Assembly (NCBI GenBank): GCA_964035545.1 | Contig: OZ037765.1 | Span: 434,001 to 498,000, forward strand | DNA: 64,000 nucleotides | From: Bugula neritina | Taxonomy: Eukaryota > Animalia > Bryozoa | Direction of reading: 5' to 3' | Shown: in pieces, positions 10,346 through 63,466 of the stretch | Position numbering within the stretch: position 1 is the first letter of the stretch | Layout: each line of letters opens with the position of its first letter | Notes under the pieces: model-generated | Database searches by the model: none | What the model saw: only the letters and a program-made list of their open reading frames with translations | Told to the model about the DNA's origin: nothing | Translations under genes and position numbers: made by a program

Positions 10346-13300
10346 ATGAGAAAAGCTGAAGTCATGTCTGTTGAGAAAATGTTCTCTAATCTTCAACTTC
10401 CTGTTTGCAAGTGTTTAAAATCCAAATACTTACAGAAACACCAGAAGGAAGAAGATGTGATGAAGTCCGACTCAGACGAAATGTTAAGTTTCTCTTACAA
10501 CTCGCAGACGGCTGACGTCAGCATCTCCAGTGACTCGAGTCGCTCTCGTAGCTCCCAGGTAGGGTGCTGTACTCTCAGCTAGGGTACTGTACTCTCAGGT
10601 AGGGTACTATATCCTCTCAGCTAGGGTACTGTATCCTCTCAGCTAGGGTACTATATCCTCTCAGCTAGGGTACTGTACTCTCAGCTAGGGTACTGTATCC
10701 TCTCAGCTAGGGTACTGTACTCTCAGGTAGAGTACTATATCCTCTCAGCTAGGGTGCTGTACTCTCAGCTAGGGTACTGTATCCTCTCAGCTAGGGTACT
10801 GTATCCTCTCAGCTAGGGTACTGTAATTCTTCACTTTTTCTGGTATTTTCTTTTAGGAGAGTCGCAGTGCGTCTGCTTCCAGCATGTCGTCGTCTGCTAT
10901 GGACTGTCTCACCACCAAGTCCACCAGTAGCCGAAAGCCACTCAAGACTGACTCACCCGTGACTCACTCTAACCATCCGTCTGCTAATGTACGACCAGAC
11001 ACACCCCACCTGGTAAATACCAAACCTCTCCGTCCAATCACGTCGCAGTACCAGAGTATGACATCACACCTTCACAAGTTAGTTTACCCGAGTCTTTAAT
11101 TGCGGAGTGATACTGGTAACACCAGCCTGTAGAAATCATGTACAATTAGTTTAAACCTTTGAGTTCAACTTGCGAAAAAAAATTTATATGTTGAGTCATC
11201 TGTCTATATGTTTAGTCATCTGTCTATATGTTAAGTCATCTGTCTATAAGTTGAGTCATCTGTCTATATGTTTAGTCATCTGTCTATGTGTTGAGTCATC
11301 TGTCTATATGTTGAGTCATCTGTCTATAAGTTGAGTCATCTGTCTATATGTTGAGTCATCTGTCTATATGTTTAGTCATCTGTCTATGTGTTGAGTCATC
11401 TGTCTATATGTTGAGTCATCTGTCTATATGTTGAGTCATCTGTCTATAAGTTTAGTCATCTGTCTATATGTTAAGTCATCTGTCTATAAGTTGAGTCATC
11501 TGTCTATAAGTTTAGTCATCTGACTATGTGTTGAGTCATCTGTCTATATGTTGAGTCATCTGTCTATAAGTTTAGTCATCTGTCTATATGTTAAGTCATC
11601 TGTCTATAAGTTGAGTCATATGTCTATAATATGTTGAGTCATCTGTCTATATGTTAAGACATCTGTCTATATGTTAAGTCATCTGACTATATGTTGAGTC
11701 ATCTGTCCATAATCTCACTTGTGTCAGACCCTCGACATTCTGTGTTGAAGATGTCAAAGTGAGCCGCTGTCTTCCCTCCCTGGCCCCTCCAAGCCAACCC
11801 ACCGCACGGTTTCTGAACAGCCTCTCTTACCAGATGTCAACCGCAAGCCGCATCACCTCATCAGGAACGCAAATGGAGCTGCCAGAAACACAACTGGTGC
11901 TGCCAAACACATGGAAGGTGCTTCCAACTATATCTCGGACAGATATGGTTCCCGGGTTACTCCACTCAACATTGGTTAGTTAGCTAACACTTCTCTCCTC
12001 CTGGTCTCTCTCTGTGTGTCGAATATTTCACAGAAATGTTTGCAGTTTGTAACCTTTACTTTTAGTAGCATTCCTATTCCATTGTTTTCAACTTTCATGG
12101 TTATTGCTGCAAAAATAATAGGAAATATCAGCTTGAAGGAAAAGAAATGTTAAAGCCTTGTAATCTATATATTTTTACTATAACCTTATTATCAAAGGAA
12201 TAAACTTTATTTTATATATAAGTTCTGGTATATTTCAGGGGATGGTGTGCGGCCGACCCCTAAACTAGAAGGACACTCCGCCCCTGTTTCTTCACGGCAC
12301 TTGCAGTCACCAGGTTCTGTTGTCGAGTCGACAGGGACAAGAGAAAAAGAGTCCCCTGTGGCCTGGTCAGTAGAATGTTAGCCTGCAAGTCATAACATGA
12401 TAACTATTCATGCTCTATGGGGCGTGAGCTTCAACAACCTGTAATCACTTGAGTGTACAATGTGAAACTTGGGCTATTAAGTTACCTGAAGCTCAATCAG
12501 TATAACTGAGATATTCACCTGGAAACTTTATTTAAGTCAGAATATATATTCAACTCTTTATTTCTTACTTTTGTTTATATGGTAATTCTATTAATAGATT
12601 TGATACTCTTTTTATAACCCGATCAGGTCTATGATTCTCTTTAGTCTGGTTCGAAGCATGGAGCACGTCGCTTCAGTCATGAAGAAGAAAATCTTTCCTC
12701 CTTTATACGAGGCCAACAAGAGTGCCTTTGTGGAGAAGATTCTACCAACTTCTCAAGTCCAGTACGGCTATCAGGGTGACAGGTACGCGTCCCTCACATG
12801 GGCCACAGAACTCAGTCTAGCCTGAAATGGATACTTTGTAAAATAAATTATTTGTCTACAATTATTTTAAATTTATAAAAATATTTCAGATGTAAGAATG
12901 TAGCGCAATATTAGCTTTAGAGTTCACATTATCATATTAGTATGGTTGGGGTTGGCGATACTCCCACCCTCAGTGAGGAGGTGGGATAGCTGAGGACCAA
13001 GTGTGTATAGCTGAGTTCTGTTTGTAGATACATCACAGTTGGGTCCGGGGAGTTTGGGGAGGTGCTGTACGGCAAGATGAAGAGCTCGGGTAAGCTGGTG
13101 GCTATCAAGGCACTGAAGAGAGACAAGAGTGACATGTACGCCCTCCTCCAGGAGGCCTTCCTGCTGCAGATTGCCAGTACCACAGGCTACGCCGCCCACT
13201 ACCGCGGTCTCGCCTCTTTCTGCGCCCTCGGAGGAGCGTATCTCGAGTGGGCCATCGTCTGCGACTTTGTGGGCTCCTCATCCGGCCCGGACCCCTACGA

Positions 13301-13808
13301 CTTCCGGCAGACGTTGAAACAGGCCCACAATGCACCAAAGACGATACAGCTCATCCTAGACTGGGTCCTCACCTGCAGCAAGATTGCGTTTGCGGTGAAG
13401 CAGTTCCACGCCATGGACATGTTACTCAACGATATCAAAGCAGACAATATTCTCCTCCGCCCTTCCGGTACAGGAAGCTACGACCCGGTGTTTGTGGACT
13501 TCGGCCTCGCCTCCATCGGGGAGGGAATCACTTTGGCTCTAGAGGTGAATGACTCCAACAGAGCGAAGATATTGAAGGAATACAGCCACATAGCCCCAGA
13601 GGTGCTGTTCGGGGGTGAGACCAACGTCCTCAGTGATATGTTCAGTCTCGGCAAGGCTCTAAGTCTAGTCTCTGAGGCTTTCCCTCTTGAGCCTCTGGTC
13701 AACATCATCTCCCGGTGTACTCTGTGGAACGTCGACCAGCGTCCCTCAATAGACGAGCTGATTGATAGCCTACACTGGGTCAGCAACAACATGCTGCTCA
13801 AGGCCTGA
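10346..13808 (+). CDS. Divergent non-RD Ser/Thr protein kinase with Ser/Pro-rich disordered N-terminus (~573 aa, 6 exons)
   Basis: Phase-consistent model: 10346-10558, 10857-11077, 11751-11974, 12239-12365, 12627-12782, 13028-13808. The whole kinase domain is in the last exon: GSGEFGEV, VAIK, alphaC Glu (LLQEA), catalytic loop LLNDIKADN, DFG, HIAPE, SDMFSLG, QRPS. AATAAA at 13888. The kinase exon is secure; the N-terminal exons and start are less certain. Confidence 0.8.
10553..10825 (+). repeat. ~20-23-bp minisatellite (CTCAGSTAGGGTACTGTATC) seeded on the CAG|GTAGGG donor of kinase intron 1
   Basis: Direct reading; about 12 copies. Confidence 0.9.
11187..11707. repeat. 20-bp minisatellite TATGTTGAGTCATCTGTCTA (~26 copies), kinase intron 2
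   Basis: Direct reading; 15 copies carry TGAGTCA. Confidence 0.95.
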
Positions 13809-18061: not shown

Positions 18062-18871
18062 TTAGTAGTCTGCGTCAGACTGAGGGGGGCAAGCGCAGGT
18101 GCACTGCGACAGGATGGGGTAGGATATCTTTATCCACTCGCAGTTCCCTTTATACGGACAGTAATATCGCAATAACTTAATATTTTTCATTTTAGTTGGT
18201 TGGCAGGACATGCCTGCTGGTATACTACAGGAGCGTCTGTTATCACACCGGCCCTCTTTGATCCAGCGAGGCCAAAACCTGATAGAAAGCTCTTTCCACT
18301 TGTACCTTACCGGACAGTAACTGTACGACCACAAAAACTTTTGTATTTTCTTTTTAGTTTTTCTATTAAATTTCACTCTCAGTTCGTAGCCGTCCGCCGA
18401 GAGCTGTATAGCTTTTTGTGTCAGAGCCTCGATTTCATCCGGCATTTTCCCTCTAGGCGTATCCTCTTTGGTGAACTGATAGAGCAGCGTGCCATTTGGG
18501 TTAGAGGTCATCTCTGAAGGTCGTCGAAGTGACATGAAATGACTGTCGTAATCTTCTCCCATTATGTCAAGCAGGTGGAACTGGTCAAGGTTATTGACAT
18601 CTGGGTCAAGGTCAGAATTGACAGTTTCCTGGAGGTCGAGAGGAATCATAACTAGAGAGGGTTTGAGAGGTAGATTCGTGTACACCGAGTCTGCTGCTGC
18701 CGCGTCAGCGGAGTCTCTCCGACTGCTGCCGGACTTCCCGTGTCTGCGATTGTTTCTGGTTGATGGCTCCTGGCTGTTTATACTAGCTGCTGTGGTGAGC
18801 AGAGGCAGGGTGTACATGGCACCCACCCATAACAACAGCATACTGCAGTCCTTGGCTCTCAGTCTCACCAT
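18062..18871 (-). CDS. NOG: Noggin (secreted BMP antagonist), single coding exon, 269 aa
   Basis: Signal peptide; clip region PLKPSLVMIPLDLQE..DLDPDVNNLD..LLDIMGEDYDSHFMS; basic patch KFNRKTKKKIQKFLW; nine-Cys knot (CPVRYKWKELSIRFWPRWIKEGRC..SCSIPAGMSC..YYC..CEW..YPILSQCTCAC). No insertion between Cys5 and Cys6, so canonical noggin rather than noggin-like. Confidence 0.95.
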   Translation of the reverse strand: MVRLRAKDCSMLLLWVGAMYTLPLLTTAASINSQEPSTRNNRRHGKSGSSRRDSADAAAADSVYTNLPLKPSLVMIPLDLQETVNSDLDPDVNNLDQFHLLDIMGEDYDSHFMSLRRPSEMTSNPNGTLLYQFTKEDTPRGKMPDEIEALTQKAIQLSADGYELRVKFNRKTKKKIQKFLWSYSYCPVRYKWKELSIRFWPRWIKEGRCDNRRSCSIPAGMSCQPTKMKNIKLLRYYCPYKGNCEWIKISYPILSQCTCACPPQSDADY

Positions 18872-51600: not shown

Positions 51601-52989
51601 ATACAGCAGTGTCTCAGTGTACTCATTGTAGTGACAACTCAAATGCCTGGATCAAATGGCTATTCTGGTGGCAAGGTTATATTTCTAGACACGGAAAATA
51701 CGTTGTATCCTTCTAATACGATTATTACTCGCTATCATTCTACTTTAATATAGATTGATCTACCTTCAATATATTATAATAAAACAAAGACAAGTTGCTG
51801 GCAGTTGTCATCTCTTGACTTCAGCTATACCATAACATGTGTCCTCTTACTCATTTCCTTAACGCTCATGCTACTCAGTCGACCAGATAGACTGAGAGAC
51901 ATTGCCGACAGGTTTAACCTTGACCAAAGCGCAGTGCTAGATAACGTGCTATATGCTCGGGCTTACACCAGTGAGCACCAGTTTGAGCTGCTCGACTTTG
52001 TGGCAGCTAAATTTCACGAAGAACCTGGAGTATTCAAACTTCTGGTAGGAATTCTTCTGTTATATAACCAACAGTAGCTTATATTGATCTTCTCTCTCAC
52101 TCACTGCTATAGTATATCACACAGTAGGTGCTAGCTCTGCTATAGTATATCACACAGTATGTGCTAGCTCTGCTATAGTATATCACACAGTATGTGCTAG
52201 CTCTGTATAGCATGTTCTGCTTGGTTCTTGTATATATAGGTGGTGGACTCCATCATGGCCCTATTCAGAGTAGATTTCACTGGAAGGGGTGAACTGGCCG
52301 ACAGACAGCAAAAACTGGCGCAGATGTTGTCCAGATTACAGAAGATTTCAGAAGGTAAGTTACAAACCCTCGCTAGTTCCCGTTGTTATACAAGTAACTA
52401 TGTATAGTAAGTACTAATTATGATGGTACTAACGTGAAGTATCTCTGTCGCCAGAGTTCAACGTAGCCGTCTTCATAACCAACCAAATGACGGCTGACCC
52501 TGGTGCCACCATGTCTTTCCAAGCGGACCCCAAGAAACCAGTCGGTGGCCATATCTTAGCCCATGCATCTACCACTCGAATTTCTCTCAGAAAGGGAAGG
52601 GGTGAACTGAGAATAGCTAAGATATATGACAGGTAATTCAAGTATTCAACCCATTGAAGTTGAATGTAAACTTTTGCCATGCTTATATCTATTATAAAGA
52701 GCTGTTTTTATAGTTCTTTGTATAGTACTAATGTATGTTGTCTATTCAGATAGCAGATTTGTACAGGGATATTCTCAGTTTCACGTATTCTAATGGGTAA
52801 ATGAAATTATTTAGGACTGAGCGGTGTTTTAAAGCACAACTAAGGTATATTTAGACTCCTATAACATGTAATGACTATTGCAGAAAGTTATTTATTACTA
52901 ATATATTGTTTGCTTGTAGTCCAAACATGCCTGAAAACGAGGCCACGTTTGCCATCACAGGTGGTGGAATTGCTGATGGGAAAGAATAG
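48611..52989 (+). CDS. DMC1: Meiotic recombinase DMC1, 11 coding exons, ~343 aa
   Basis: Exons 48611-48667, 49571-49615, 49795-49845, 50266-50364, 50589-50671, 50799-50893, 51632-51704, 51879-52044, 52240-52354, 52455-52632, 52920-52989 (1032 nt). [12 protein letters not shown], Walker [80 protein letters not shown]. These are DMC1-type rather than RAD51-type residues. Confidence 0.97.
49920..50260. repeat. 22-bp minisatellite CTTATATAATGTACACTGTATA (~15 copies), DMC1 intron 3
   Basis: Direct reading; the final unit variant forms the acceptor (CTTATATAATCTACAG). Confidence 0.93.
51705..51878 (+). other. U12-type (minor spliceosome) GT-AG intron in DMC1
   Basis: 5' site GTATCCTTC; branch site TTCCTTAAC at 51855-51863, 15 nt before the intron end; splicing restores ENTF|RPDRL. 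Confidence 0.92.
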
Positions 52990-53993
52990 AGTCTTGGATT
53001 CTACTATTAGTGTTATTATTGACTCTAACTCAATTTGTTGTTACTCTTTGTTATATTATATGCTAGTTTTTATTGTTGATTGAAATGTATATATTTTTAT
53101 AAACCCACTCAATTTATATTACTATTGTGTTCTGTTATGAAATAAACCACATAGCAGAGCTAAACTAGGTGGCTGTTTGCTGGACCAGTACTGTGACACT
53201 TCAATATTTTAAATTTGAAGTTTGTTGAACTCACAGTTGTTGTAAGCTTGCTTATACAGCATTTCTTATACAACCTCCACAAAAATATGCAATGTGATAA
53301 TTTTGTCTTACTCCAATCTCGAAACCTTCAACCCACAGTAGCAATATGAACGTATACAAGTTGCTTATCAATGTTTGGAAGCGTCTGAATATAATCTATA
53401 ACTAAATTTAATATTTCAAGCAATAATTTTACAGTATATTTATGTAATGGAAATTATCAAACTAGAATACCAACTATACAGTTATTTATAATTGCAAATA
53501 GCAAAACATCAATCCAATATTCAATACAGTTCTCAGCTAGAGTAGTTGCATTGTAGTGTACATGGCTAATAACTTTCCTTTAATCTAATATTTATTTATT
53601 GTCTCATGCAAAATAAATAGCTGCAATATGTAATTATAATTGATTCAGTAATTATAGAGGTCGATGCAGAATAATAAATTAGATACTTAAAACTTATACG
53701 ATTACACAAACTATAACTTGTAAGGATAAAATAGTTCTGTACATATAGTTGGCTACACCTTAAAAAGTTGTTGTTGCACCTGAACATTATAAGAAGAAGA
53801 AAACATCATTAGCATGGGTTTTGCTTTTCAAAATAATCTACATACATTTTATAATAATATGCAACTTAGATTATGTAACTGTCATATATAACATTATGTA
53901 ATGCAATAAAACAGGAAATAATATTACTATAAGCAACAGATATCAAAAACCAGAACACGGTGTGACATAGGGCTATATTTGAACAGCTCATTG

Positions 53994-56900
53994 TTATTTT
54001 GAAGGGAGTTTGTTGGGAAATTTGGGAAAGAAAAAAAGCTTCCTGAGATGAGTGAAGGAGCATTCTAGTCGGGTTGGCACATTCCCGCCAGTCTGATCTC
54101 CTGTTTTCTTGCAGTAAGCAATGCTGACCTGTCTAACCCTGTCCTGTATCTGCAAGTAAAATAGTCACTTGTGAGATGGTTTGTCGAAAAGTTTTAGTGT
54201 ATCAATATTCAGTTATACTTGACCACAATGCATAGTCAGAAATATTTTTCTATATAGCATGATATTAAAAAAGACAAAAGTTTTTAATAAAATATTATGC
54301 AGTGTAATGCTAGCAAAATAGAATTTTTTTTCAATACTAATAGTATAAACTATAAGCCATTTCTTCTAATTGTAAACCAACTCAATGTGTTTGAATAAAT
54401 TACCAAAAAAGGTTTAAACTGGTTGTCCATAAATTGACACATTTAGGCAGTATCTCCCCACCGCAAATTTATATTTATATATTTGAGTCATTATAGTAAA
54501 TAAATATTTAGGTCACCCATTACATAATGGCATTGCACAATTTTTTGTTGAGCTATCCGTAGGTTAGAAATACCTCGCAATAACTTACAATCTTGAAGAG
54601 TTCATCAACATCTCTGTGGCAACTGTGTTTATAAAATGTAGCCACTAGTATTCTAATAAACCATGTACCATAAGCGTCGTGTCTACCAGCTTTATACACT
54701 GCAACATCAATATAACATACATTAGGTTTTGTGTTTAAGATAATATAATATATTGATAAAACCTAAACTTCAAGACTTGTATATGTTTCATACATTCTGC
54801 ACTTGGTTTTACAATGTAGAAGTCATCTACATCCAGGTGTGTGAATCTATTGAAGTCAGCATTTGATTGGGTGTGTTGATCTGGTGAAACTGTGGAGGGA
54901 GATGAGGGTAGAGGCGCTGCTGTTGGTGATTGTTTGGTAGAGCTTTTTGACTGCAAAGCAGTACCAAAATCAGATCTACCTATAATAGTAGAAGATGAAA
55001 AACATACAGAATTAAATTATTAATGAGGGTGGTATGTAGGAAACACGCGTAACCTATGTTCACTAAACTTCTGGTATGATAGGCAATGCTAGACATTTTT
55101 TGCAGCATTATAATTTAAATGTTTAGAATCATCGCTCAGAATTTTACTTTAGCCATGAAGGTTAAAAGTCTTATAGCACAATGCTACTTTACATATATTC
55201 GCAGCAATCTGTAACACCAGGTATGTTCAAATAAAGGGCAACTGCTAAAGCTATGTAGAATAATATGAGAAGTTTAGAATATAATTTAGTAGCTTTTAGT
55301 AGTATGAAACAATTACGCAAGCCTTCATGGTTTATATGGTAATGTTTCTTTAGAGAAAATTTCTGGTTGTAATAAGACCCATACACTTTTTGGTGTATTT
55401 TATTTCGAAAAGCTTTTTTAAGACCCCAAGTCATAATGAACACGGGTGATAGCTGTACAGCGCAAACTTTTATAAAATAAGCATGGTGGTTTTTGAGCTA
55501 GATTCTTAAAGATGGCTTGAGTTTTTTCAGGTTTAACTCTCAATTAAATTTACAGCAAACAGGAATAGAATAATTTTAGAAAAACTCATCTATCTTACTT
55601 CCTGAGCATGCGTGGAATATAATGAGTTTGGGCTTTCCTCCCATAGCAGGAAACTTGCTAGCTGAGAGTAATTCTTTAATTTCCGAAAGGTTGACAGGTG
55701 TACAATCTCTGTCGTAGAAAACATTGCCCAAAGTTCCGTGAGACATGATGACTAGTACAAACATGCTCAGGTGATTGTGCTCTTCCTGATCAGTCTCCAT
55801 CTTTAACTCTGCTAGTGTTTCCTGAAATAGTTAGACCAGTACTAATTATTCCTTCCACATATCTTACTGAGATTTAAAAATATATGTATCACCTTTTAGC
55901 TGTTTAAAATAAAACCAATAGTTCAACAATTTAGGACTCAGCTTGAAGTTTGAGCATACCTGAAACAATTTTTAACTTGGGTTTTTACGTACTTTGCAAG
56001 AGTTTGCCTAAAAGTTAAAACTAATGCAGTACTCTGCCAAAAATGCAAGCTACCTCCTTTGTCAAATCAAACATAGGTTCATCTTCTTTGACTACAACAA
56101 ATCCCATGTCTTTGAACAACTTTTTGATATTGTAGTAGTCTATGTGTGAGCCATGGCGAGTTGCTTTTGTATTTTCTCTGCCTTCTTTTGTGAAGAATCG
56201 TTCGTAGTTAATAATCATGGCCCGACCTTGGACAGGGTTGCTCACTGCGTAAACCTACAACGAGAAAGTTGTGCAAATCGATGGTTCATATAGAGAATGA
56301 CTTTTACAGGAATTTTTCAGCAGGTTTAGGAGTACAAGACTGTGGTGCTGTAATGCTCCAGTAACTATGCACTATAGTGCAATGGGTAGCTCACGCTGAT
56401 GTTCAAGTTAAGGACAAGGGGGGGGGGGAGAGGGGTAGTAGTTTTACTGAAGGAAATATCAGAGGTGACCTGTTTGTGATTGCTAAATAGCTTCTTAATC
56501 TTTTCGTTAGTGGTGGGCTTTAGCTCCATGTCTTCTATCAGAGAGATGAAAGGTTCAAGGTCACTTTGCGTAAAGTCAGCATATCCCCTGTCTTCGATGT
56601 CGGAGCATTCACTGATTTCATCATCTTCGGCTTGCAGATGCAGCATCTCTTCCTTCACCACATCTACAGGTTTCACAGTTTAACACAGAATAGTAGCTGT
56701 GCGGCCAGTGCAACTACTCGTATTTTGATATACACTTGGTGACTCAAACTTATACATTTTCAATGTATCTCCGTCGAGTGAGTATTTTAATTTAGAGGCA
56801 GCCATAAAGTGTTAATAGCAGCTGCATTAGCTGCTACAAATATTTAAATATAGTATTTATTTTACTGCTAGGCTATTTATAATGACGTATATAGCATTCA

Positions 56901-59900
56901 ATCAAAACCTCAACACTGAAATTAATATAAAATTGTCATGCTACATTGCATTGACCAAAACTTAACTTACAGTAATTTACCAAATAGATTAGTGTTATTG
57001 CTAATAGCATTATTCTTGACCCCTGCTAAGGGCTTAGATTTTTTTGTACAGTACCTTTCATCTATATGTTATATAACTATATAACATATTTCAACACTTT
57101 TTTATTTGTATGCAAGTATATAGAATAATTATATAATGTACTCATATAATCTAATAACACAATGACTACTGGAATTATCATACCAGAGAGAGCAGTTGCA
57201 CTCTGTTCTTTTTCTAACTTCATTTGATTCACACAATCTTTTATGTAATCAGCCTCTTTTTCAGACAGGTGCTCACCTGTAAACGGAAATAAAATATAGA
57301 GTAAAGAATACAATAAAACTCACTAAAGGGAAACATTTGTGAAAAGCAAGAGAAGGACAGAAACATACATGGGTGGAGAAGGGCTGTAGGTATTTCTTCA
57401 TCTTCACACAGAATTGTTGAGGATCCACTGCTAAGTTTGACATCTGGTTGCAGGTGTTTCAAAGAGTGAACACACCATTGAGGATTGACCAATCTCGTTG
57501 GACAAGGACGTTCTAGTAGCAAGCAGTGGGCACAGTAGCATGCAGTGACTGGTCTACTTGCTGTCCAGTTCTCTAGAACATGTCTCAGACTGTTGTTGGT
57601 CACTGTGACGAGTCTCTCCCACATTTTACTAGTGTTTATGGCATTAGATGACACAAAGAAAACCACCTTTCTTGACGCAGAGTCATGCACCAGTTGTATG
57701 TAAATACCATCCTGGTATACATTAACTCCATTCTTTTTAACTTTGACTATGGAAAACTCATATGGAAACAATTCTAGTAAACCAATAGTCATTTGATGAT
57801 AGATGTACTCTGGCAAGGCTAATCCGTTGAATTTGGTCTCGGCTTTCAAAAGTATGCTTTTTGGTGCAAAATAGAAATTCTTATACAAATCATTGGCAAA
57901 CTGAGGCATAATGAAAACCTGTTTTTCAGAATTGCTTTTTATTGGACCATGCAACAATCGGAAAGCCTTGAGCAAACAAATGGCAACTTCTACATCTTTC
58001 AAAACTTTAAAAGAAGTTTCCTTCTCTATCAAATAGATGAGTAAAACATCCATCATCAGGCCGGTGTTGGTAAAGTGATTCACATACTCGGCGAATTCTT
58101 GCTTTTCAATGCACTGACCATTTGGAGAAACGTACGGCAGAAACTGGTCAATTCGACTTTTCCACCTTGTGCTATAATCATGGTAGTACAAGACACATAA
58201 GAGTGAAGTAATTTCTGTGATTTTAGGGAAAATATAAGGCTTGCGAGAATCAATATCTTTATACCATAAGATTTTGCCACAATCGTGCATATACGTGAGA
58301 ATTATCTCTAGCTGCTTTGATTCAATGTCAATTTGTTTTGTTCGCAGCATAAGTAAGATGTACCAAAATGAGTGATAGGCCGACGGCAGGCCTGCTATTC
58401 CTTCATTGACTTCTTCCCAAACTTGAGGCAATGGCTTGATGAAGTCTTGACTGCTTTGAAGAAGAGATTCTCTGATCATATTGAATACAGCATATTTGTC
58501 ATCATTCCCTATTTCATATATATCTTCGGCTAGAAATATATTGTCAGGTGATTTATTAAAATGTCCGATTCGAGCAAAGTCGCCACCTAGTGCTTTTTCT
58601 TCGTTGACTATTTTCCTACATAGCTGGTTAGAGCAGTCAAGAAAGCTTTGCCGAAGCTTTTGAAATTCTGCACTTGGATATTTATCTTTATGAGTTAGAA
58701 TGAGTTTTGGTGCTCCGAGAGTTGGGTTTGCAAGATACAGATGAGACATGTAGTCAAAGGCTAACCTTCTAACAGCCTTTTTACATGTTAATTCTTTGGA
58801 AATTTGGTCATACTGCTCCATGTTGACTACTATGACTGGGATGCAATTTTGCTTCAGTGTCAGTTGATAAGTGATATGGTAGACCTCCTGGCCTCCCATA
58901 TCAATGAGACGAAGTACTGTACCATCCACCTCCACCTCCTCAACATTAAACACTTTTGTTGTCTCGTCTTTCACAGCATCCGGACTTCTGTCAGTCAGTA
59001 TTCTCTTCTTATCAGCATTCTGTAATGTTCTAATCAAGCTAGTTTTCCCAGCCATTGTATTACCCAGCACAGCTACAGTAGCAAATGGTAGACTTCTACC
59101 AGCACCTTTAGCCAAGTCTGTGTAGTATTGTCTCACAGCATCTACTCCTCTCTTACATATTTCTAGTGGAGGAGATGCTAGTGATTCACAGTTTTCTACT
59201 TGGAGAGTACGAAGTTGACCTAGCCTTATGATTTTAGCATCCAGAGATTTTAGATCGGTGTTATAGGATACGTCCAACTCTCTCAGATTTAGCAACCCGC
59301 ACACAGACAAAGGCAAGGCAGTAAAACCATTCCCTGCAATGCTTAGTTTTTCTAGCTTCTGCAAACTTTCTATACTGAAAAGTTATATACAAAATATATT
59401 AGCAACTTATACATAATGTATCATAACAAGTAATATGAGAAAACTTGATATTATTGAAATAGTTGAGTATATCATTACTTTCAGCAAAGCAGCACAAGTC
59501 TTTGTTATTACAAGCATAGGCTAATTTTTCTAAAAGTAAAGGACAAACAGGCTGTGCAATCATAATGATACTATAATATACACACTCATTTGACAGGGTT
59601 TTCAGTCGGCAGTTGCCTAAGTGTAACTCTCTCAGTTGGGAAAGAAATGTAAAGATGCCATCAGGTAAACCATCTGAAAAGTCATTCCATTGAATATCCA
59701 AAACTTCTAATTCAGTGAGTAGTAAGGTGCTACAAGGTTAAAGAATTACAATTTACGTTGTCAGAGTTAGTATGAGAGTGTTTTGACAACTATATAATAT
59801 TTTTCTGAAAATTTAAGAGAGGTAAACTAATAAGTATAGGTCTAAATGTTAGGCTTAGCCTTTTACAAGATAGTTCCTTTATATGCAGCGGTTTAGCTCA

Positions 59901-62563
59901 TAGATAACTTTGCTCTTAAATAGTCAACAATTGTCTCATTTTAGTGAGTTTTCAGTCAATTATTTGAGTTAGAGCTGGTAGGTCTATTGCTAAAAGTGTC
60001 CCAATTCTCTGGCTGTTTGATATAAAGGAAAGTTAGACCCACCTCTTGGGTAGAGTCACCAGATCACAATGGTGCATGTACAATTCTCTCAACTTCAGTA
60101 GACTTTCGAATATGTTGCCATGTAGACCTTCAGAAAGGTTGTTTCTTGATATATTCAACACCTCCAGGTTTTCAATATCAGATATGCTGTAACATTCATA
60201 AACACATTCATGAAAAGGAGATAAGAGCATCTATAATACATAATATGCAGTCTACATTTATAGACCAACAAGACCCAGCAACATACCTCAGCACACCTCA
60301 CCTAACTGAATGACTGTTCATTGAGTAAGAATTGCACACTATTTAGATGCTTTAGCATGCCTGACCCATACTTTTACTAGAAGAATTACTTGCAGGGCTG
60401 CAATACAATATTTTAGCCTAAGCAGTACTTTTACTACATTGATTTCCTGTTTAAAGCATTAAGAAGCACCCTGCGTTTTAAAAGCCGCCACAAGTTACTA
60501 TACAACAGACTAATAACAGACTAATAATGGACTGATACCAGACTGATAATGGACTGATACCAGATTGATAACATACCTTCTTGAGAGGGTTTCCAGCTTG
60601 CAGTTTTCCATGTTCAATTCTTTCAACGAATCCATGTAGAAGAATATATCACAGGCTAGCTTTTCTGATAAAGCATTTTCAGACACATTTAGCATTTCAA
60701 GGCCCTCCATGCAGAATAAACTATAAAATAAATGCAGTTAGGTTGATATGCAGAAAAACAATTAAAAACGCGGGGAAAATAAACATGACGAAGATTCAAA
60801 AGCCTCTACTGTCCTTGTAACTATTGAAGTGTATTTGTTTACAAAATACAGAAATGTGTTCGTTGTAAGTTACCAAACCAATTGGCAGTTACACATCTAA
60901 TATCAAAAAAAATATTTTGTCAACTAAATTGGGATATTTTAATATCTGATCTTCCATGCAGAACTGAGACATGATGACATCTTGAAAAAAAATTATTTTA
61001 AAAGACCACACAAAAATATATGCTAACATATGCTAACATATGCTATTGTAAACTAATATAGGTTATTGTATGCTAAAACATGCTATTGTATGCTAATATA
61101 TTCTATTGCATGATAATAAATGTTATTTGCATGTAGGCTAATTGATGCTATTGTAAACTAGTATATGCTAATGTATGCTAGTTCCTTCTTGTACTAAAAA
61201 AGCTGAAACATTTTATTCTGTAATAAAAAGATTTGCTTGTGTACCTTTGAGTTTAAATAGTTTATAGGTTTTATATACTTTAAATTTTAGTTAGCAAGTC
61301 TCATTTACCAGGTATTAACTTGATAAACATTAAACCATCATAACCTTGCTAAAATATGTGTGTGTGTGTTCATAGGAAATAAAAAATGACAATGCAACTT
61401 AGAAATATTAGTAGCAGCTATAAGCCTATACAGACCATTAATAATATTACACTACCTGTCCCAGTTGGCATTTTTAACCACTTTTCCAATTCTGAGACAT
61501 CCAAGCCGAGGAAACAGCTCGTCCATGTTTGGAGGGATGTTATTTCTCAGAACAGCATGTGTCACCATGTGGTCGACGTGTGTCAGCAAGTGTGTGTGCA
61601 GGTGCTTGATGCCATCAGTTGTATAATCTACAGTCTCACTGCTCACCCATTGCTCATCGTCTGCTTCTATCGGACACGTATTGAACCACAGGGTGTATAA
61701 ATCTACAGAGAAATATCATTTGTGCATACAGAAACTCACACTGTTGATATAGCAACTATCTGTACAACATCTACATATATCAGTACTTATTCTTAGAGCT
61801 AGGTCAACGTAGCAACAAGTCAAGTCAACAGCTAAGTCAAGTCAACAGCTAAGTCAAGTCAACAGCTAAGTCAAGTCAACAGCTAAGTCAAGTCAACAGC
61901 TAAGTCAAGTCAACAGCTAAGTCAAGTCAACAGCTAAGTCAAGTCCCGTCTATGGGGGAAAAGTTTCAAACTGAGTCAGTTTGGGTTAATTAAGTCAATA
62001 ATTTGCATTGATTTGCTAGTTTAATGAATAACTTGGGATTAGAAGAAAGTGGTACCGTGAGTAGCATAGTGTATTTAGCAGTTCAAATAAACAGAATGAA
62101 TTTATAGATTCAGGTCTAGCTATTTTTCAAGTCACCATGTACTCAAGTCAGTGTAGGTATAGTGTAGGTATAGTGTAGGTATAGTGTAGGTATAGTGTAG
62201 GTATAGTGTAGGTACAATGTAGGTATAGTGTAGGTATAGTGTATGTATAATGTAGGTACAATGCAGGTATAGTGTAGGTATAGTGTAGGTATATTGTAGA
62301 TATAGTGTAGGTATAGTGTAGGTATAGTGTAGGTATAGTGTAGGTATAGTGTAGGTATAGTGTAGGTATAGTGTAGGTACAATGTAGGTATAGTGTAGGT
62401 ATACTGGTATAGTGTAGGTATAGTTTATATTATAATCCAAGATAACACAACAACACAAACAGACTATATTATGAAAGTCTGTTTGAAATTGTTTAAAATT
62501 TATACAATTGAATTAATTTAATCAACACTAACCTTCACTCTTATCGTATCCTCTGAAGGACAT
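53994..62563 (-). CDS. LRR-Roc-COR (Roco GTPase, MFHAS1-like) protein fused to a C-terminal caspase (C14A p20+p10), ~1292 aa, 13 coding exons
   Basis: Exons 5'->3': 62563-62533, 61702-61456, 60720-60577, 60186-60043, 59729-59586, 59374-57369, 57276-57184, 56663-56470, 56254-56054, 55821-55599, 54979-54794, 54698-54589, 54149-53994 (3879 nt, all GT-AG, phases consistent, no internal stop). LRRs; Roc G1 GNTMAGKTS, G2 ETTK, G3 DMGGQEVY, G4 THKD; COR (LPQVWEEV..LTYMHDCGKILW); CAHC motif; caspase GRAMIINY..RHGSHID, VIMSHG, GKPKLIIFHACSG, GTWFIR, LRKLFFFP. The start codon is uncertain (alternative first exon 63067-63019). Confidence 0.85.
61818..61945. repeat. 17-bp minisatellite AAGTCAAGTCAACAGCT (~7 copies)
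   Basis: Direct reading. Confidence 0.9.
62150..62424. repeat. 11-bp minisatellite GTGTAGGTATA
   Basis: Direct reading. Confidence 0.92.
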
Positions 62564-63466
62564 TGCGAGTGGCTATATATTCCCCCCTCAGTTTTTTAGT
62601 TAGTTGCTTGTAGGTCCTCAGTCTCACATCAACAAATGTGATGGGAGTCTGCAATAGAATAAGTTTTGCTTTATCAAGTTTTAATCTAGCGGCTATGATA
62701 CCTGAACGCAACACAATCCGCTTTGCTTCGTTATAAGAGCTTTTCTCATAGTAGCTTTTGTTCTACAGCCTGCATTACACATTCTATTTTTGGTAATAGC
62801 TCAATTAAAAGAGGAGCCCGCAGCAATGAGACACTGCATATCTTGATAGTGATAACTTCAACTTAAACAGTCTAATAATAAACCATTAGATCACAAGCTA
62901 AAAGTTACCTAGAAACAACAATTATTTATATCTCGCGACACTACCAGCAACCAGCAACTAGAAATTACAAATACATAGACTAGTTACCTCCTATAAATAA
63001 TATTGTATAGAGGCGCACCTGCTGCTACCTGTCCCTCCCCTGAACCACCTGCTGACTCGTCAGCCATCTTGTTTCTTTCCCCAAGTGCTACTCTGAAAGT
63101 GACTTGTTTGCATGTTCATAGAGATTTATCAGCATAACCCATTAAGTGACCTTTTGAGCAATTAGTTGACATTAGTCCAGATATTATATCACAGCAGTCA
63201 GTGTAAGGAGAAAGCATTGTGTTACATATGCTGATATGCAACATGCAGTAGTAGCATACTAGACTAACTGAACAACCAGTTGAACTTCAACACATTTTAT
63301 TTCAAAGAAAGAGTTTAGCTTCTGGATAGACTGGACAAACCATGAAGGCCTCTAAAATCTAAATGAACCGAAATAAGTGGAGGCAATTCAGGCTTTTATT
63401 TTAATATTGGCACAGCTCAAACAATTTATAACAATATACAGTAGTATATTATGTAAACACGCGCAT

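Follow-up and report, generated by a model that had tools for sequence, protein, structure and literature searches.

A Roco-caspase gene of the bryozoan Bugula neritina and its expanded family

Gene structure, transcripts and domains

The stretch of the Bugula neritina genome analysed here (the window; 64,000 nucleotides of contig OZ037765.1, positions 434,001 to 498,000) contains, on its minus strand, a gene that extends from position 62563 to position 53994 in the coordinates of the 64-kb window. Within one spliced reading frame, the gene encodes leucine-rich repeats (LRRs), a Roc GTPase domain, a COR domain, an acidic linker and a caspase, in that order. The model comprises 13 exons, and all 12 introns are GT-AG with matching phases, leaving an open frame of 1292 amino acids to a TAA stop codon. 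A preliminary description of the locus had proposed this exon model (∼1292 residues), and the frame check reproduced it exactly. Profile searches and structure prediction were run on individual exons or on the Watersipora subatra orthologue P0109 as a stand-in, and the full-length model was assembled solely for frame checks and for alignment to retrieved sequences.

Transcript support comes from Logan RNA contigs (assembled contigs, not reads) of four studies, which align to positions 53880–59790 and correspond to exons 5–13. Coverage is piecewise, with individual contigs each covering part of the message and none the whole. The spliced joints 59586/59374, 57369/57276, 57184/56663, 56470/56254, 55599/54979, 54794/54698 and 54589/54149 occur in contigs of the four studies and include all three junctions by which the Roc-COR exon had been predicted to reach the caspase exons (57369/57276, 57184/56663 and 56470/56254). 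The 57184/56663 joint is seen on an allele with a 6-nt in-frame indel, and the short side of the key 56470/56254 joint overlaps by just 23–55 letters. One contig of 1754 nt runs from COR into exons 7 and 8, and another spans the five caspase exons together with the 3′ untranslated region (UTR). The remaining caspase joint, 56054/55821, is found in run X4, and an 18-nt longer in-frame form is found in runs X5 and X8. Run X4 also holds a frame-shifting acceptor at 55841, 20 nt upstream of 55821.

The RNA contigs are 95–98% identical to the assembly, and this 2–5% difference is that of another population or cryptic type. Cross-mapping of paralogue RNA was rejected as the source of the joints because the divergence between contigs and assembly is far below that of the paralogues, whose Roc-COR exons are at most 69% identical to that of the gene at the protein level. 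Read-through to the stop codon at 57241 was likewise rejected as the main form; the 92-nt intron concerned is spliced in all four runs. Intron 8 is retained in contigs of three of the four runs; there, translation would end near 56365, ahead of the caspase (open reading frame 56365–56676). These contigs could represent pre-mRNA or a caspase-less, possibly regulatory, isoform.

The Pfam scan places LRRs in exons 3–6, Roc above the cut-off in exon 6 (E 1.2e-6), a weak COR-A match in the same exon (E 0.078) and Peptidase_C14 in exons 9 and 10 (E 1.8e-10 for exon 10). The AlphaFold2 (AF2) model of exon 6 has a predicted local distance difference test score (pLDDT) of 92 from an 81-sequence alignment. 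Its top Foldseek matches are LRRK1, the LRR-Roc-COR protein of Chlorobium tepidum (CtRoco) and LRRK2 (E 4e-23 to 1e-17). The model matches the RocCOR structure 3dpu with a template modelling (TM) score of 0.66 by target and the COR-only structure 3dpt with E 2e-10. COR is real because the fold matches Roco structures that include an isolated COR. The nucleotide-binding motifs G1–G4 are intact: GNTMAGKT (residues 341–348), G2 T376, DMGG (395–398) and THKD (464–467). They are present in all 30 paralogue loci that were read, each as a five-kb stretch, and form conserved alignment columns. On its Roc motifs and predicted COR fold, the gene is assigned to the Roco family. By Pfam and by fold, its switch is Roc-COR in place of a NACHT or NB-ARC ATPase, as had been suggested.

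In the caspase, His1096 (SHG) and Cys1140 (HACSG) align to the catalytic dyad of caspase-3. Both S1 arginines (R1034 and R1210) are kept, and the S1 glutamine is replaced by histidine, turning QACRG into HACSG. The nearest solved structures are CED-3 and caspase-8, -9 and -3. Watersipora P0109 contains a complete caspase domain (E 1.5e-36), the model of which matches caspase-9, -8 and -3 and CED-3. A bacterial origin of the protease was rejected, as it is an animal-type caspase with shared intron positions.

The linker between COR and the caspase contains no CARD, DED or DD according to Pfam searches of the linker exons and of the orthologues' linkers. In the AF2 model of P0109, the exon-8 linker is mostly of low confidence or disordered and forms short helices only. 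A hidden CARD or DED was rejected on the same grounds: Pfam is blank, and the orthologue model displays no death fold, in agreement with the earlier remark that no prodomain precedes the caspase. The protein therefore has a caspase domain but is not a classical initiator caspase, which would carry a CARD or DED prodomain. An acidic motif of the linker, [LI]S[DE][LC]SD, is kept in 30 of 31 loci and is echoed in Watersipora proteins.

At the N terminus, the segment encoded by exon 2 has no match to a Pfam family, and an Atlas search with it was blank. It has 45 matches in the genome, mostly upstream of Roc-COR exons, and is 94% identical to an independent allele. The start of the frame is putative. 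A further ATG near 63062 is a possible upstream alternative and may belong to an exon at 63020–63070 whose splicing to the 5′ portion of exon 1 (62533–62648, minus strand) keeps the frame. The frame from this upstream ATG has ∼48 codons and a stop codon that overlaps the modelled start; it may be an upstream open reading frame or a different true N-terminus.

Table 1. Exons and motifs of the Roco-caspase gene in window coordinates
Feature	Position	Strand	Content and evidence
Exon 1, coding part	62533..62563	-	Putative ATG at 62563; sequence and frame check
Exon 2	61456..61702	-	N-terminal ∼82-residue segment common to paralogues
Exon 3	60577..60720	-	144-nt phase-2/2 LRR cassette of two 24-residue repeats; Pfam LRR, phases
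Exon 4	60043..60186	-	144-nt phase-2/2 LRR cassette; Pfam LRR
Exon 5	59586..59729	-	144-nt phase-2/2 LRR cassette; Pfam LRR, RNA joint 59586/59374 in 4 runs
Exon 6	57369..59374	-	Last LRRs, hinge, Roc, COR-A, COR-B; Pfam Roc, AF2, Foldseek
P-loop GNTMAGKT (residues 341–348)	59041..59064	-	Within exon 6
Exon 7	57184..57276	-	Short helical linker; flanking joints in RNA of 4 runs; exon shared with Watersipora genes
Exon 8	56470..56663	-	Acidic linker; RNA; Pfam blank; AF2 of Watersipora P0109
Acidic motif ISECSD (residues 953–958)	56599..56616	-	Candidate caspase-release or phosphorylation site (putative function)
Intron 8	56255..56469	-	Spliced in 4 runs, read through by contigs in 3
Exon 9	56054..56254	-	Caspase p20 start, S1 arginine R1034 (RHGS); Pfam Peptidase_C14, RNA
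Exon 10	55599..55821	-	His1096 (SHG, 55740-55738), Cys1140 (HACSG, 55608-55606); Pfam, caspase-3 alignment, RNA
Exon 11	54794..54979	-	Ser/Pro-rich intersubunit linker with several Asp, p10 start; RNA
Exon 12	54589..54698	-	p10, second S1 arginine R1210 (GRH..YGTWFI); alignments, RNA
Exon 13	53994..54149	-	p10 C-terminal strand, stop TAA; 3′ UTR to at least 53880

The family in Bugula neritina and its relatives

The 216-Mb genome contains at least 104 distinct Roc-COR exons, a lower bound. Each of the 104 is followed within 17 kb by a caspase catalytic exon on the same strand, with a median distance of 1.6 kb in the first 66. The linked caspases account for about three quarters of all caspase-exon matches (104 of 137). 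Paralogues lie on at least eight contigs and are clustered on C1 (32.5–35.5 Mb), C6 (2.5–6.3 Mb) and C7, and the window gene stands alone close to the beginning of C1. Tandem caspase clusters for which the genome searches returned no upstream Roc-COR exon occur on C9 (9.32–9.41 Mb) and C2 (30.51–30.55 Mb).

The catalytic cysteine motif is kept in at least 69 of the 104 linked caspases. These 69 resolved members fall into the active-site classes QAC (27), HAC (13), EVC (15), ETC (9) and EAC (5), so that the S1 glutamine is replaced by histidine in 13 and by glutamate in 29. H-type caspase exons are ∼70% identical among paralogues. On C1 between 33.8 and 35.1 Mb, genes with a His pocket (HACSG) and genes with a Glu pocket (E[VT]CSG) are interleaved; there, the caspase exons are ∼44% identical between the classes, and the Roc-COR exons are ∼67% identical to that of the window gene.

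The LRR cassettes are symmetrical, and 29 of 30 in the paralogues have the form AG-144nt-GT in phase 2. In four loci, three to five of them separate Roc from the N-terminal exon. Variation clusters at the exposed x positions of LxxLxLxxN on the concave face. In pairwise counts among related repeats, the ratio of nonsynonymous to synonymous substitution rates (dN/dS) at the LxLxx x positions is 1.4 with local dS and 2.8 with exon-wide dS (bootstrap 1.7–4.6). The ratio is 0.35–0.38 elsewhere in the LRRs and 0.20–0.24 in Roc and COR. A sensor surface that diversifies with dN/dS above 1 at concave-face positions is a feature shared with NLRs.

A metagenome allele of the window gene (JGI 3300003318) carries a 24-nt deletion (59151–59174) that leads to a stop at codon 304 and an LRR-only product; the RNA contigs lack this deletion. 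Unless it is an assembly error, such a null allele is as expected under birth-and-death evolution. A metagenome search for related loci returned no match. In searches of the genome that ignore introns, no NB-ARC and no full NACHT were found (one P-loop fragment), and CARD matches numbered only four.

The closest named relatives are solely from Watersipora subatra, with at least nine Roc-COR and caspase models. The nearest, XP_067947674, is 47% identical in the caspase, carries QACSG and matches the window gene in exon layout, beginning with the large Roc-COR exon. Because Watersipora shares the fusion and the exon layout, the fusion predates the split between the two bryozoans. The RefSeq label of these relatives, 'MFHAS1 homolog', is a name given by similarity, and the Roc-COR tree was built without vertebrate MFHAS1.

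LRR-Roc-COR-caspase proteins are also found in amphioxus, where at least 11 database entries from several Branchiostoma species (e.g. C3XQ16/XP_002614028) have the same architecture and the same five caspase exon boundaries, whereas the caspase is only 20–30% identical to the bryozoan one and of the QACRG type, and Roc-COR belongs to another clade. In the Roc-COR tree, the bryozoan proteins form a long-branched clade of their own, and the caspase-bearing amphioxus proteins are scattered among kin without caspases. A single clade of all caspase-bearing Rocos was rejected in the approximately unbiased (AU) test (p-AU 8e-8), as was a joint bryozoan and amphioxus clade (p-AU 0.021, with long branches in play). 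On the strength of the tree and these tests, repeated attachment of a caspase appears likelier than a single origin, although the long branches weaken the test. The amphioxus fusion was probably gained separately, and the shared caspase exon boundaries probably reflect the ancestral caspase gene.

Several other proteins touch on this theme. Amphioxus Rocos swap their C-terminal effectors among GT4 glycosyltransferase, OTU, Death and caspase domains. In a Lingula Roco, the C terminus gives a weak CARD match. An unnamed ENA protein (P0260, 916 residues) combines a pannexin-like, LRRC8-type segment, LRRs and a QACRG caspase and has no Roc.

The preliminary description knew of no characterised animal protein with this architecture. 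The architecture itself is not new and has been glimpsed in bacteria, amphioxus and one annelid. LRR+AP-GTPase+COR+caspase proteins are listed for bacteria (Kaur et al. 2021, PMC8195603), which have the domains in the same order and for which the same sensor-switch-effector logic has been proposed. They are likewise only predicted, their effectors are swapped among 24 or more domains whereas the bryozoan effector is fixed in more than 100 paralogues, and the bryozoan protease, unlike theirs, is an intron-bearing animal caspase. The supplement tables of the same paper include a sponge protein, Amphimedon XP_019855546 (AP-GTPase+COR+DED+TRADD-N+caspase), which unites a Roc-type GTPase and a caspase in one chain but keeps death-fold adaptors and is a single gene. 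Amphioxus 'LRRs-caspase' hybrids have been proposed as shortcuts from recognition to apoptosis (Zhang et al. 2008, PMC2575513); the relevant passages of that paper name LRR and caspase, not Roc-COR. A caspase of the annelid Owenia fusiformis with a ROC prodomain is mentioned in passing, as a single gene and not a family, in a study whose sampling did not include bryozoans (PMC11463336). A literature search that covered few subscription journals returned neither an account of this family in bryozoans nor a functional test of a Roco-caspase from any source.

MFHAS1/MASL1, LRRK1/2, DAPK1 and CtRoco share the LRR-Roc-COR core and its fold, but in place of a protease they have a kinase, a death domain or no output domain, and they exhibit no diversifying expansion to more than 100 copies. 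Brown-algal LRR-ROC-COR proteins are candidate immune receptors with LRR-exon shuffling and diversifying selection (PMC3341825, PMC11378527). As portrayed there, they resemble the bryozoan family in their large expansion, in LRRs on separate shuffled exons and in diversifying selection; in the plain LRR-ROC-COR form given for them there is no caspase, and each LRR exon bears one repeat, compared with two per 144-nt exon in the bryozoan.

A receptor-like reading and its alternatives

With moderate confidence, we favour the reading that the window protein is a cytoplasmic single-chain receptor for non-self or damage with a tethered caspase and that it belongs to a large bryozoan family of such receptors. 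The receptor-like character that had been proposed is supported, and the 104 members of the family and the diversification of the LRR face strengthen the case. The splicing, the fold, the pairing in all 104 cases, the retention of the cysteine motif, the dN/dS of the LRR face and the presence of three to five cassettes argue for this reading. The null allele, the lack of full NACHT or NB-ARC matches, the conservation in Watersipora and the effector swapping in bacterial and amphioxus Rocos also speak for it, as do the LRR-exon shuffling and selection described for brown-algal ROCOs (PMC11378527). The resemblance to the NLR inflammasome and the Apaf-1 apoptosome would be one of working principle, namely a variable LRR sensor, a nucleotide switch and a caspase output. 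The bryozoan protein differs from both in that a Ras-like Roc and COR take the place of a STAND ATPase, the LRRs are N-terminal and the caspase is covalently attached without CARD, PYD or DED. It is neither an NLR nor a classical initiator caspase, but it probably combines the workings of both.

Several points weigh against this reading. The Gln-to-His change in the S1 pocket implies that the activity or specificity of the window caspase may be altered, and the window gene has three LRR cassettes only and sits outside the big clusters. The counts behind dN/dS are not independent, and the site classes were set after the entropy table had been seen. The search for NACHT and NB-ARC disregards introns. 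Finally, CtRoco monomerises on GTP (PMC5714945), the opposite of what a simple proximity model expects.

The anatomy, splicing, motifs, expansion and selection pattern are observed, and the mechanism that we propose adds to them autoinhibition, a ligand trigger and caspase pairing. At rest, the LRR arm would lie folded against Roc-COR, the arrangement seen in CtRoco and LRRK2, and would block productive pairing of the caspases. Ligand binding to the LRR face would shift the Roc nucleotide cycle, release the arm and rearrange or cluster Roc-COR. The tethered caspases would then dimerise and cut their own intersubunit linker, with a probable further cut at the conserved S[DE]xSD site that would free the protease. 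Active caspases would cleave death or immune substrates. In this way, one chain would replace an NLR, an adaptor and an initiator caspase without death-fold domains.

The stricter version put forward in the preliminary description, in which a ligand or nucleotide drives a COR–COR dimer that serves as the activating platform for the caspase, is doubtful. The caspase is attached directly after COR-B, the Roco dimer interface, the linker of ∼100 residues is long enough to reach, and initiator caspases are activated by dimerisation (PMC5123071). However, CtRoco forms dimers in its empty and GDP-bound states; GTP binding yields a monomer, and the LRR swings aside by ∼135 degrees (PMC5714945). In full-length LRRK2, COR-B dimers are kinase-inactive, the LRR acts as a brake and interface mutations raise activity (PMC11052575). 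Because GTP monomerises CtRoco and the LRRK2 COR-B dimers are inactive, 'dimerise to fire' may be wrong in sign or too simple. A dimer at rest would require a separate brake, and given the need of initiator caspases for dimerisation, either the proteases are kept apart in the resting dimer and activation means release and re-assembly, or the GDP dimer fires. Release of LRR autoinhibition followed by re-assembly agrees with what is known of Rocos more closely than dimerisation of COR alone does.

A second alternative concerns the protease itself: the window copy and the E-x-C class may be non-canonical, that is, weakly active, changed in P1 preference or partners or decoys of the cFLIP kind, with heterodimers formed with QAC-type paralogues via COR, so that signalling would be a property of the network and not of single chains. 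The replacement of the S1 glutamine by histidine in 13 and by glutamate in 29 of the 69 resolved members, the interleaving of H- and E-type genes in the 34–35 Mb cluster of C1 and the caspase-less Roco that intron-8 retention would yield point in this direction. We nonetheless regard it as unlikely, given that His1096, Cys1140 and both S1 arginines are retained in the window copy, H-type caspase exons are ∼70% identical among paralogues and the closest Watersipora protein has QACSG.

The ligand may also be self. Bryozoans are colonial, and their polypides regress cyclically. The LRR face could accordingly read polymorphic self ligands in allorecognition between colonies or in polypide turnover, and diversifying LRR faces and birth-and-death evolution fit this as well as they fit pathogen sensing. 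More than 100 paralogues on at least eight contigs, though, suit a receptor repertoire better than one or two histocompatibility loci, and inspection of the 1292-residue model by eye reveals neither a signal peptide nor a membrane segment, so a role in allorecognition or turnover is given a low probability. An artefact, in which prediction joined a tandem Roco gene and a separate caspase gene, is suggested by the piecewise contigs and the occasional retention of intron 8 but is highly improbable and already largely refuted by the 1754-nt contig, the 56470/56254 joint in four runs, the 104/104 pairing, the size of the 215-nt intron (too small for a promoter or prodomain) and the RefSeq models with the same fusion in Watersipora and amphioxus.

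Under the favoured receptor reading, the family bears on two wider subjects. Workers on LRRK2 have long asked how the Roc-COR nucleotide cycle affects the domain after COR, and a natural Roc-COR protein with an attached dimerisation-activated protease offers a direct read-out, in which processing should reveal the nucleotide and oligomer state that is 'on'. The tethering of about three quarters of the caspase matches to diversifying LRR-Roco sensors, together with the lack of a NACHT or NB-ARC receptor in the searches, suggests an animal immunity based on GTPases rather than STAND ATPases. Tentatively, Roco-caspases may have assumed the role of NLRs and inflammasomes in cheilostome bryozoans and serve as their principal set of intracellular receptors, with more than 100 GTPase-gated self-executing proteases making up most of the caspases. 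The His-, Glu- and Gln-pocket classes may pair or cut different substrates, and the design may have been reached repeatedly, in bacteria, amphioxus and bryozoans.

Neighbouring features of the window

A Rad51-family recombinase exon (51805–52077, plus strand; Pfam Rad51, DMC1-like by eye) lies tail-to-tail with the Roco-caspase gene. Further away, the window contains a single-exon noggin gene (18062–18871, minus strand; Pfam Noggin E 7.6e-56) and a 248-codon open reading frame with a divergent protein-kinase domain (13062–13808, plus strand). Intron 1 of the Roco-caspase gene contains short tandem repeats, seen by eye, with units of ∼11 nt and ∼17 nt (62140–62410 and 61830–61950), and many similar repeat arrays elsewhere in the window produce spurious long open reading frames.

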